DNA from: Corallochytrium limacisporum Hawaii
Lineage: Eukaryota > Protista > Pluriformea
Direction: 5' to 3'
Length of the DNA: 62,278 nt
Assembly (NCBI GenBank): GCA_002811645.1
Contig: PDIP01000131.1
Span: 10,849-73,126, forward strand
Below the pieces are notes generated by a model. That model was not told the DNA's origin, made no database searches, and worked only from the letters and a program-made list of their open reading frames with translations. Shown here in pieces: positions 37,695 through 46,742 of this stretch (position 1 is the stretch's first letter; every line of letters starts with the position of its first letter). The position numbers and the translations under genes are program-made.

Positions 37695-40600
37695 GTAATA
37701 GTTTGGAACGTGCTTGCTGTTGACACTGACGGTTTAGCCGTGCACTGCATGGGAGGGGGGGATATGAGGTGATGGACGACAGCAAGGCTTGTGGTCCCAT
37801 ATTTCATCGGTATTTCCTCTGGCATCTTACTGTCCCACTAAGGACAGGAAGGCACGGTTCGGCGATGATCTCAGAATCGCACAGAACCAAACGCGGACCG
37901 GCACACAGGAAGTCTTGCCCCGTTCACTCTGTTGCCTGCTTTGCGGCATCGGCGTCTGTTCTGGAAGGTGTGCCAGATCTTGGCAGAACTATTCAATCAT
38001 ATTCAAGTCCCGGGGCCCCCCAATCCCAACGTTCACATTCGGACTGTTCCATATCCGACTGCTAGGAACGCCGTAGAACACTATGGACCAATCATGGGCC
38101 CCTCGGGTGATGGTAATTTGGGTCGGTTAACAGTCCGGTCGGGACATGGGCTACACATTGTGCCTCTAGTATGCATCTGAGATCGAATTCTGCCGTGGTT
38201 GCTGTGCTTCCAGTTTCAAGGAGGACCAAGACCCACGCAGACACCCCAAAAAGCATCTATATGAGGGCACTGCCTGGGTTTGTGGGTCGGAGAGTTCAAC
38301 GACTGCGCCTGGGCGAGGAACACGATTAGTTTGCCCTGTGTCATCCGTTTACACCACCAGAAGGCCTTGGCTCCGCGTGCCGCGTTGCCCCAAAAGTATG
38401 CAGGAGACGTGTTCTTGTATGCTTGCTGCAACGCCGCTAGGAGCACCTTTGCCGGGCACGTTTGGACCCTTCAGACTGTGCCTCATACGCTGCAGCTCCT
38501 GGATACAAATTGAAAGTTTTCAGTCCGATACTGCACAGATATTGTACCAGAAGCGATCCTTCACCGGCATCGATGACCTCCAATTGGTGAAGATGTGCCC
38601 GTCTGTTGATTACCACCTTCTTGACATCATTTGTCTGTTGTTATCAGATCGATATCGACCTGCAAGATGCTCAAGTAGTGAATGAGTCTACATACTAAAT
38701 GTACTGCCCAGAAATAAGGTATTGCAAGTCCTTCCATTTCACACGGAGCTCAACCCCAAGCTGCCTTATGCAAATGCTGAAACACGTGAATTGTTCCTTC
38801 ACTGTTCTGCCATGCACCGAATATCTCTAAACTCCCGGTCCCCTCGAGCATATTCTGCATGCCATGGTCATCCCGCCCACATTGCCATCAATTCTGCTCA
38901 CCGGAACAATCGGTCATTCATCACTCACTTCTTACTGACCATCGCTCTGTTCCTTTTCGATCTCAATATCCATATGAATAGAATGACAAGCCATGGACCA
39001 TGTTTTTTCCGGAAAGCACATGTTCTTAACAAATCATCCAAACACGGGACACCGCCTGAACCTTGTGCCCATGGAACTTCAGAAGGGAGGCGTATTGCCC
39101 ATATGTTCTCCTAATCCTTCTCGATTCCACTTCTCCGTGCAGATAGTGTAACCCTTGCACATCTGTGATAGTCTTTTGTGCCGTATCTGACCAGGTGTGG
39201 TCAACTTTATGAACAATGCTGCTGCAAAGATGCTTGAATATGTACCGGATCCGTGTACCTTATTCAAACTCCCCCACTGTCCTGGACGGCTCCACTGTGC
39301 AGCACGGGCGGGTCTGGCTGTTGGTCCGCACACCGTCCGAACGACATTGCGTCAGGAAAAAAAGTTACGTCCTCATCAAAGTCTACAAAATATCCATATA
39401 TCCAGTATTACATTCGATTTTTTCCTCCTTCAGGTGTCGCTCACAGGTCTCTCCGTCCACTCTCGAAAAAAAAAATCCGAGCCTTCAATTTTCTCAGACG
39501 ACCCTTGCTCCCAAGAAAACCCGCCCTTTCCCCCCGTCTCCCTGGGTTCCCCGAGAAAATAGACTCCCATATGAATCATAAATATTAATCATTAAATATT
39601 TTCGGATTTACACAATATTGATTTCTATACTCAGCAAGGGGTGCCGCAGTGGTTGCCTGCTCACTCTCTCGGGCCCAAATCGTAAGAACCACAGGAACAG
39701 CCCAAGCCCCTCCGTGTCCAAGATTTTTTGCAGTACGTTCAGTCCTAAAAAGTCCCCTTTACTCCGAGGCACGCCCACCCTAGCGAACACGAACCGCGGC
39801 AGTAAAACCGGTGCCCGCGTTTTCCCACCCCAACACCCCCCCCGGGGGGAGGGGGTTGGATTGGTTTCGCTGAGCAAAGTAAAAAACATCGCAGTATGTT
39901 CACTACTGGCCTTGGTGGAACACTGCACGTCGGGTGCAAGCGCGCGCGAAAACAGCAGATAAAGAGCGCAACAAAAAAAAAAGGAAGAACTAAAAAAAAC
40001 ATGGAAGAAATGAAAAGAAACAAAAATATATAAAAATTAGAACAAAAGGCAAAGAAAACTGCACTGGCGTAAGTACCAAAAGTTTTGTTTCGCCGTTCAC
40101 CTACCGGGAAACCAACCACCCCGCCTTTCCTTTCCTTTTCTCTATTTCTTCCGGCTTCTCCCTCGGTCTCTCTGTCTGTCAGACTCCGATAGCCACAGAC
40201 CGGCGCTCCGGGGCCAAAAAGAAAAAGAAAGGGGGGGCGGGGGGNNNNNNNNNNNNNNNNNNNNNNNNNNNNNNNNNNNNNNNNNNNNNNNNNNNNNNNN
40301 NNNNNNNNNNNNNNNNNNNNNNNNNNNNNNNNNNNNNNNNNNNNNNNNNNNNNNNNNNNNNNNNNNNNNNNNNNNNNNNNNNNNNNNNNNNNNNNNNNNN
40401 NNNNNNNNNNNNNNNNNNNNNNNNNNNNNNNNNNNNNNNNNNNNNNNNNNNNNNNNNNNNNNNNNNNNNNNNNNNNNNNNNNNNNNNNNNNNNNNNNNNN
40501 NNNNNNNNNGAGGGAGGGAGGGAGGGAGGCCCAGTGTTGCCCCGGGCAGGGGGCCGAGCACCGCCGCTCCGCGGTCTCTCTCGCTCTCTCTCCCCGGCCC

Positions 40601-41312
40601 GAAAAACCTCAGCGGGGCAGCAGCAGCAAACCCCCCCCCCGCGGGGGGGGCCTGGGGGCCGCGAGGCCGCGGGCGGTGTGGTTAGCCCTCTCTCTCTCTC
40701 TCTCTCTCTCCCCCCCCCTTCCTCCGAAAGGGCGCAACACTGCCTCGGTACCCCGACCCCCGGGGGGCCTCCCCTCCCCTTTCCTCCGCGTCACATGTCC
40801 CCGTGGAAGAAATTGCACTTGGGATTTGTGTGGCTTTTTTGTTTGCAACGGTCGCGGCCGTGTGGTGTTGTGGTGTGGGCAAGTTTTTTTTTTGGTTTCT
40901 TGTCGGTGCATTTTGGTGCGTTGTGATATTGAAACGTATTGTGTTTGTGTGTATGCGTACACTGTATTTACTTTTGTGGGCCAGACCGGACGCGGTGATG
41001 TTGTGGTTTCTTGGGATCGTGTGGCTATTTCTTAGCGTAGAGACGGGTAGCTGTAGAGCTTTGCCATACTAGTGGTAGATTTTACGCAGGAGACTGACCA
41101 GGCTTTAAAACATTTTCCTTTCGGGTTTGTATCATAGATCTAAAGAATTGCTTTCTCTTCTGGTTCAGTTCACAAGCGACGTTGCGGTTGCTCACTTCAT
41201 GGTTGGCATAGAAATATGGGAGCTGTGAGGAGCTAGGCAGTAGCGAAAATTCGGAAACTGGCTGTCAATTAAACCGAAAAAGAATATCAGATCTGATACG
41301 TTTGGTTTACCT

Positions 41313-41427
41313 GTAAGTGTTTAAAGGAATTCTCCGAGGAAGGCAACGGGATCAAATCACAAGAGGGCTTCGAGGCTTTGCAAATCCTAAGCAAAACACA
41401 CAAAGCCTCTTTGAGACTGTTCCACAG
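41313..41427 (+). other. Candidate 5'-leader intron of CK2-alpha (GTAAGT...TTCCACAG)
   Basis: Consensus donor at 41313, a CTAAG branch-like element and a CAG acceptor at 41427; no transcript support available. Confidence 0.4.
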
Positions 41428-41956
41428 ACGTTGGGTATACATTTGAAAGATTTGGTTTCTGGCTTCTGCGAGGGTTGGCCTCGCCACGTATAACAGCAGT
41501 GGCATAAACAGCATCAGTGTTTTTGGGACCCGTAGCAGAGGAGTAGCCACACGACTGGCATCCACAGTTCGGACAACCACACAGCCTAAAAACAACGGCA
41601 AAAGCAACAATCACAGTGGCACTGCCAAGGCTTCCAAGGCAGCATCACTGAAATCAAAGAATTCGAAGGCATCAGCACACGCAGCGCGCGGGTTTGACGT
41701 TGGCGACTCAGCGGCTGTGAAGAAAGCGCTCGGTGAGGCAGCTAGTGTAGATCCTTTGGCCCTTTGGCAAGACGATCCGTGGGAGATTGAAGAGCTCAAG
41801 GACGTCAACAACAAGTACTTTCGCAGGCAACGGTTAGAACAGGCCAAGAAGGCAGTCAGGGAGCGTGAAAAGAACGCCCTTTGGACCAAGGCAGCAGAAG
41901 CAGCCAGCAGCAGCAACCCTAAACACAGACTACGACTCGCTGCCAGCGAAGACATC

Positions 41957-43114
41957 ATGTCAAGTGTAAGCAGAGCCCGCGTGTACGCGGATATCAACAT
42001 CAACAAACCCCGGAGTGCATGGGACTACGACAAGTTCCAGATCACCTGGGGAGGACAGGATAAGTACGAGGTAGTACGGAAATTAGGCCGTGGCAAGTAT
42101 TCGGAAGTGTTTGAAGGCGTGGACGTGACACAGGACCGCAAAGTAGTGGTTAAGATCTTGAAACCCGTAAAGAAGAAAAAGATCAAGCGTGAGATTATGA
42201 TTCTTCAGGCCCTGCGGGGTGGACCCAACATTATCCAGCTCCTGGATGTCGTGCGTGATCCGCAGTCCAAGACACCATCTCTGATCTTTGAATACGTCAA
42301 CAATATTGACTACAAGGTTCTCTACCCGACCTTCACAGACTATGATATTCGGTTCTATCTCTACAAGGTCCTGCAGGCCCTCGATTACTGTCACAGCTGC
42401 GGCATTATGCACCGTGACGTCAAGCCGCACAACATCATGATTGACCACGAACGTCGGGAATTGCGCCTAATTGACTGGGGATTGGCAGAATTCTATCACC
42501 CGGGACGGGAATACAACGTGCGCGTAGCCAGCCGCTACTTTAAGGGACCCGAACTATTAGTCGACCTGCAGGAATATGATTACTCGTTGGACATGTGGTC
42601 TCTCGGCTGCATGTTTGCGAGCATGATTTTCCGCAAGGAACCTTTCTTTCACGGCAATGACAACTACGACCAGCTGGTCAAGATTGCCAAGGTCTTGGGC
42701 ACGGACGAGCTCTTTGAGTACCTGGAAAAATATAACATTGAACTCGACCCACACTTTGACGAGATTCTGGGACGGTACAGCCGCAAGCCTTGGAGCCGCT
42801 TCATAACTGCGGAGAATCAGCGCATTGTCACGTCGGAGGCCATTGATTTCCTCGACCGGTTACTCCGCTATGACCACAATGAGCGTCTGACGGCCAAGGA
42901 GGCAATGGCCCATTCGTACTTTACACCTGTGCGGCCCTACCTGGAGCTGAAGGACCCGCCAAAACCCGCACAGATGCCTGTACCTGCAAACGAACAAGCT
43001 GGCAGGGGCGCTGGCGGCGCTGAGGGAGGTGCCCCAACGACCATGGACGGAATGGCGGGTGACGGTCCCAACGGCCCGGTGTCGAACGGTGGCAGTGGAC
43101 CTATGCAGACCTAA
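41957..43114 (+). CDS. CSNK2A: Casein kinase II catalytic subunit alpha (canonical AUG form; frame is open upstream to 41447)
   Basis: SRARVYAD N-terminus, [43 protein letters not shown] and [12 protein letters not shown] are CK2-alpha signatures. Confidence 0.98.
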
Positions 43115-43347
43115 GCGGACACAAGACAACCTGGTGAGACCTCGGGAAACAAAGGAGAAGTGGTTACAGTGGGACCTCTGTTTTAACTTTGAAGTAACGG
43201 ATTCAAACCGTCACTGACCGGAAGTAAGAAATTAAAGCGAAGACATACTAAAACATGCGCCAGTGAACACATTTATACAATTGCTAACTAAATGGAATTC
43301 GGGCCCTTGCATCAAGCATTGATGATCGTGACGTCCTTCAAGTTTAT

Positions 43348-46197: not shown

Positions 46198-46742
46198 GAC
46201 TTGGTTTGCAAATCTTCAATGTACTACCACAACAACAAAATTGGACTCATTTTGGCCGATTCAAACGTCTGCATTTGACAGAATATTCTATGTCACATGT
46301 TTGTGCGAATAAACACAGAGCCTGACTAACGATTTGATTATTCTCGCAATGAATCATCAATACGTCTTCTCGTACGAACCCTGAACTGTTGGATTCATTC
46401 AGTTGCAAACCAAAAACTTCTCATTCCGCCGAGCTTATCATCTACCTTAAATTCTATTTTGCAGTTTTCATTCACGACAACACATATCCTAAGACCACTG
46501 ATACGTCGTGACCGTTTACATACCACGACCACATCAACCCACAGCTCCCTAGTGTGGTTTGTGTGTGCGTGCAGGTGCGGGTCTCACACCGCAAGAAAAA
46601 GCCAACACGAGCCGGGGACACCCTTCCCCGCCCCTACACTTCTATCCCGTAGAATAAACACAGACCAACAGGACCACTGTGGTTGCGACCAAGTTTATTT
46701 GAAAATTTTATTCAATTTTGGTTGAGAGCGTGAATGCGATCC

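Follow-up and report, generated by a model that had tools for sequence, protein, structure and literature searches.

N-terminal extensions that begin at near-cognate codons are known from cpc-1 of Neurospora crassa, from mitochondrial isoforms of yeast proteins, and from PTEN. The cpc-1 leader is longer than 700 nt and contains two uORFs and a long AUG-free in-frame extension with several near-cognate candidates (PMC5487733). An inhibitory uORF2 follows these near-cognates, which are conserved across 100 species at a dN/dS of 0.35 (PMC5487733). In yeast, acid-free basic leaders are found on Ala1, Grs1, Hfa1 and Hyr1, mostly as extensions of <25 aa on otherwise non-mitochondrial proteins (PMC6582344). 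The signalling enzyme PTEN has long CUG- and AUU-started N-terminal isoforms with changed location, PTEN-alpha and PTEN-beta; their starts have been mapped experimentally, and PTEN-beta has a conserved downstream hairpin (PMC5376652). CK2-alpha itself carries an N-terminal extension in plant pCKII/CKA4 (At2g23070), roughly 100-120 aa before the conserved start motif, where it is the AUG-started transit peptide of a separate paralog (PMC4189921).

The CK2-alpha gene of Corallochytrium limacisporum probably also yields a version with 120-170 extra N-terminal aa, and its extension may work like those of cpc-1, the yeast isoforms and PTEN-beta. As in cpc-1, a long leader with two uORFs is joined to an AUG-free in-frame extension with several candidate near-cognates. 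However, here the open frame starts only after both uORFs have ended, the product is a kinase, and the extension is known from C. limacisporum alone. The proposed near-cognate start and the acid-free basic leader on an otherwise non-mitochondrial protein recall the yeast cases, although the extension, which contains an acidic motif and a long helix, is at 120-170 aa much larger than most of those. The likeness to PTEN is that of a signalling enzyme with a long second N-terminus, but no hairpin of the PTEN-beta kind is evident in the CK2-alpha leader. Unlike the plants, C. limacisporum is a plastid-less opisthokont with a single CK2-alpha gene, and its extension has no sequence similarity to that of pCKII. 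The single gene and the dissimilar extensions exclude membership in the plant plastid CK2-alpha group. In the literature searched, neither an N-terminally extended, non-AUG CK2-alpha isoform nor this locus is described.

The CK2-alpha locus

The window is a stretch of 62,278 nt from contig PDIP01000131.1 of the 24.1-Mb assembly of C. limacisporum, a species whose CDSs are almost without introns (PMC5560861). The features of the locus, all on the plus strand, are:

41087 to 41089, plus strand: 5' end of the RNA-like contigs of either sample, with an acceptor-like CAG/G
41199 to 41228, plus strand: uORF1, 9 codons, weak context (18th percentile)
41216 to 41236, plus strand: uORF2, with 6 codons in register with CK2-alpha, G at +4 and A at -3; the public spliced model begins at its ATG
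41225 to 41449, plus strand: predicted intron of the public model, 225 nt, GTGAG...AAG, unspliced in both contig sets
41447 to 41590, plus strand: front of the open frame, acid-free, Arg/Ser/Thr-rich and presequence-like, of insecure coding status
41591 to 41956, plus strand: coding-like part of the extension, 122 codons, in which a disordered, Lys/Ser/Ala-rich stretch is followed by a Trp-acidic motif and then a long predicted charged helix
41957 to 43114, plus strand: CK2-alpha catalytic subunit, 385 aa, encoded without introns by a single-copy gene whose ATG has a strong context

The ORF at 41957-43114 is a true CK2-alpha. It matches the Pkinase domain (2e-65), is 80% identical to CK2-alpha across 322 aa, and has CK2-alpha for all of its top matches in a PDB search (3e-175). 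The Ser/Thr kinase domain, the basic lysine cluster and the conserved N-terminal segment are all present. The genome has one CK2-alpha gene, the next-closest kinases being 32-35% identical, and two CK2-beta genes. ATG 41957 is the usual CK2-alpha start, at the conserved CK2 N-terminus; CK2 homologs mostly begin 1-16 residues ahead of the motif at which it sits. Its context is at the 78th percentile among 73 starts of the species.

An open frame without ATG

Upstream of this start, the CK2-alpha frame is free of stop codons for 170 codons, from 41447, directly after TGA 41444-41446. The plus-strand ATGs are at 41199 and 41216 and then at 41957, with none in 41219-41956 in any plus frame. The initial annotation had reported both the open frame and the missing ATGs, and its coordinates are correct; CTG 41459 does have G at +4 (and T at -3), the first Asp is 79 residues downstream of it, and a GTGAG donor does occur at 41225. 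The annotation had also called the extension hidden. The frame is a real outlier, but the extension is already part of the public protein Clim_evm13s35.

The frame is the longest pre-ATG open frame among 75 long ORFs, drawn from the window plus 200 kb of a second contig (backgrounds consist of 73-74 genes). The runner-up has 133 codons and is non-coding by codon score, and the rest have at most 39. In dinucleotide shuffles, the probability of no stop in the pre-ATG frame is 0.006. The same kind of shuffle predicts about 7 ATGs in 41219-41956, where none is observed (P = 0.0002). None of 224 real 510-nt CDS windows is ATG-free (mean, 10.4 ATGs each). When the extension peptide is held fixed, the absence of out-of-frame ATGs has a P of ~0.01, and the lack of Met has a P of 0.014. 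The depletion is strand-specific, since CAT is undepleted (7 copies).

AUG depletion had been taken as a signature of non-AUG initiation. It is non-specific: an intron-retained mRNA, present beside a minor spliced form, would need an equal purge to make the short kinase, and the depletion therefore cannot separate a near-cognate start from a spliced-in AUG.

Coding signal of the extension

When scored with a codon model built from 44,561 C. limacisporum codons, the 170 codons of the extension receive 0.103 bits per codon, which is the median of real first-170-codon windows. The score exceeds those of 216/216 leader frames and 20,000/20,000 shuffles, and the other two frames of the region score negatively. 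Within the extension, 41591-41956 (122 codons) scores +22.7 bits, like real coding sequence. In contrast, the 47 codons of 41450-41590 score -6.2 bits, at the 47th percentile of ordinary leader and the 5th percentile of real N-termini. Leader frames are open in 12% of cases and acid-free in 3%; as 41450-41590 is both, it is modestly likelier to be coding than non-coding. The proposed presequence is nevertheless the least secure part of the extension, because these first 47 codons score as leader.

Inside the extension, the two samples that we compared differ by a silent change and by a replacement of Ala with Val, and neither a stop nor an indel occurs; these changes are consistent with coding and too few for a selection test. 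A single-sequence fold model is poor, being confident solely for one long charged helix. The ATPase inhibitor IF1 (PF04568) was tried as an identity for this helix and rejected; the IATP profile does not match it, and the genome's IF1 is on another contig. Overall, the extension is quite likely to be translated.

Homologs of the extension were sought widely. Its sole match in a set of 5.8 billion proteins is itself (Clim_evm13s35). No homolog was found among 1.84 billion representative proteins, in Pfam or the ESM Atlas, or in metagenome contigs and encoding contigs. The C. limacisporum genome has no second copy, and the N-termini of about 120 CK2 homologs show no similarity to it.

RNA-like contigs

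The contig evidence comes from two 2015 runs, whose RNA nature is our guess; genes differ in depth within one run, and upstream of 41087 cover is absent. With ~30 differences between them, the runs probably represent the two known strains. Each sample has one contig that begins at exactly 41087 and continues unspliced, with no joints, through leader, extension and kinase. The main contig has a depth of ~140 and is unbroken across both proposed junctions in both samples, whereas minor variants at other places were enough to interrupt it in one sample. Contigs of this kind drop rare variants, give one flat depth and carry no strand. At 41393, shortly before the open frame, the second sample lacks 1 nt.

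The edge at 41087 probably reflects splicing from a short first exon that the contigs do not show and that might lie in the N gap at 40245-40509; otherwise it would be a sharp transcript start. No CAG/GT donor is found between 39445 and 41087. Trans-splicing may be a further option; the contigs show no loose end and the literature searched reports none.

The contigs also reveal features outside the extension. The C-terminal tail of CK2-alpha (43030-43115) is variable, with 21 nt inserted in frame after 43057 in the second sample and several short variant contigs in the first. CK2-alpha and the TBC gene overlap at their 3' ends. The leader of this TBC1D7-like gene (46198-46527, minus strand) is unspliced in the contigs despite about nine ATGs; either a retained leader intron or transcription running on from the SNARE-like gene upstream may account for this cover.

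Candidate start codons

Both uORFs of the leader terminate ahead of the open frame. Real starts of the species have A at -3 in 55/74 cases and T at -3 in 4/74. The near-cognates in 41447-41590 are ATT 41450, CTG 41459, ACG 41486, ATA 41504, ATC 41513 and CTG 41555. Their contexts, ranked against real starts, are at the 1st (CTG 41459), 15th (ATT 41450), 18th (CTG 41555), 40th (ACG 41486) and 42nd (ATC 41513) percentiles, so that none is in a top context and the best are at the 40th-42nd. CTG 41459, originally proposed as the initiator, fares worst, with T at -3. Start context is known to weigh more for non-AUG than for AUG initiation (PMC5666671). RNA structure downstream of the candidate starts is not unusually stable (z=0.58). 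Initiation spread across several weak near-cognate codons would fit best, by analogy with Neurospora cpc-1 (PMC5487733).

The frame start is also one of just two sites in the 24-Mb genome of a near-identical word of 15-17 nt, at 41438-41454 (plus) and at 46209-46223 (minus), the latter 11 nt ahead of the ATG of the convergent TBC gene. The pattern was picked post hoc and may be due to chance.

A possible second isoform

The reading we prefer, to which we give roughly an even chance, is that one mostly unspliced mRNA yields standard CK2-alpha from ATG 41957 and a minor long isoform from a near-cognate start. The single CK2-alpha gene would produce an mRNA with a leader of at least 870 nt, mostly unspliced from 41087. 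Ribosomes would bypass the two tiny uORFs (9 and 6 codons), or reinitiate after them, and scan the AUG-purged stretch of 738 nt. For the majority, initiation would be at the strong AUG 41957 and the product ordinary CK2-alpha, and a minority would initiate earlier at one or more in-frame near-cognates, with ACG 41486, ATC 41513, ATT 41450 and CTG 41555 likelier than CTG 41459. The resulting isoform would be 134-169 aa longer, its extension most likely a localisation or docking tag. Translation of the extension, its start codon, reinitiation and any targeting are what we infer; the frame and its lack of AUGs, the codon scores of 41591-41956, the contigs and the strong context of ATG 41957 are what we observe.

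In favor of the near-cognate start are the outlier frame, the codon score, the AUG purge, the contigs of two samples, the single gene and the cpc-1 precedent. Against it are the absence of an extension homolog, the mediocre contexts of the near-cognates, the location of the best starts within the leader-like 47 codons, the limits of the contigs, and the TBC contig, which likewise crosses a uATG-rich leader. That one gene makes a standard and a longer CK2-alpha, as the initial annotation had it, is likely in view of the upstream coding signal, the unspliced contigs in two samples and the strong ATG 41957; the CTG start and the mitochondrial destination that were part of that proposal do not share this standing.

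Splicing and other alternatives

The long isoform might instead come from a minor mRNA in which an AUG micro-exon is spliced onto the extension, at AAG 41449 or CAG 41584, while the retained major mRNA gives the short form. The AUG would be ATG 41216 via the donor at 41225, ATG 41199, or one in an exon hidden in the N gap. The first of these is the public gene model (EukProt protein Clim_evm13s35), which was also the alternative of the initial annotation; this model is a consensus that includes ab initio predictors (PMC5560861). Its intron contains four in-frame stops and the second sample's 1-nt deletion. Since the contigs of both samples cross 41225-41449 unspliced, the intron is probably not the major form, and a spliced product would be a minor one. 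The acceptor AAG 41449 is weak, and a better but out-of-frame CAG lies 22 nt upstream. An open ATG closely precedes GTGAG in 17/39 other leaders, so its coincidence with the donor at 41225 weighs little. However, leader splicing in this species looks real. In the 300 nt upstream of 73 genes, GTGAG occurs 39 times in sense and 13 in antisense, TAG is found 74 versus 35 times in the last 50 nt before the ATGs of 73 genes, and U1 is present in the genome, consistent with introns confined to leaders ahead of intronless CDSs. Also, the in-frame CAG acceptor 41584 adjoins the coding-signal peak at 41591. Because of these two points, and with the AUG purge equally well explained, we hold the spliced-AUG source to be unlikely but well above negligible.

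It is less likely still that the extension is untranslated today, being a recent coding relic or a chance-open, AUG-free 5' leader, and that only standard CK2-alpha is made. The lack of homologs and the poor fold apart from one helix would be explained; any scanned leader is expected to be AUG-free, and among ~7,500 genes a few long open leaders are possible by chance. However, the coding score of the 122 codons is specific to frame and strand, and the second sample maintains the frame intact. We consider it very improbable that the signal is the shadow of an antisense gene or that the long form arises by other recoding, such as frameshifting or readthrough from the uORFs. A minus-strand ORF of 137 codons (41611-42024) does overlap the extension, but the sense frame scores 0.186 versus 0.003 for the in-register antisense, which rules out the antisense gene. 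uORF2 does share the CK2 frame, but the four in-frame stops and the sample-specific 1-nt deletion lie between it and the extension.

Where a long isoform might go

The first 83 residues of the extension are without Asp or Glu and rich in Ser, Ala, Lys, Thr and Arg; an acid-free N-terminus has a P of ~0.03 under a local non-coding null. The amphipathic helical moment of this N-terminus, 0.37-0.41, is between the median and the upper quartile of all proteins, and presequence-like controls from the same genome have moments of 0.43-0.57 (HSP70 0.56, ETF-alpha 0.57). Thus, of the mitochondrial presequence originally proposed, the acid-free, Arg/Ser/Thr/Ala-rich composition stands, but the moment is below those of the HSP70 and ETF-alpha controls and the first 47 codons are leader-like. 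Were translation to begin at 41555, or splicing to join 41585, little of the presequence-like part would be left. Mitochondrial import, if the extension is translated, is doubtful. Presumably, the basic disordered stretch with the Trp-acidic motif and the helix could equally serve as a docking tag, or as one for the nucleus or for binding nucleic acids. In the PDB, the extension has a single weak match (E=0.011): the Asp-Asp-Pro-Trp motif with its flanks (41765-41800) resembles the N-terminal tail of the transporter SLC34A2, possibly by chance or by convergence on a short (docking) motif.

The mitochondrial outer membrane is a known site of CK2 (Tom22, Mim1; PMC7912454). In the most far-reaching version of the near-cognate reading, a uORF-gated non-AUG start on the single CK2-alpha gene would yield a presequence-bearing isoform that is imported into mitochondria, and the mRNA would be one of several that are AUG-purged for leaky scanning. 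We regard this version as improbable. If it were true, a close relative of animals would have a translational equivalent of the plastid CK2 paralog of plants.

At a minimum, the public CK2-alpha model depends on an intron that is absent from the available RNA-like contigs. Stable transfection of C. limacisporum is possible (10.1101/2020.11.12.379420), and the isoform question is therefore directly testable. The long isoform, if real, would show how translation can diversify a master kinase in an organism with one gene for it.
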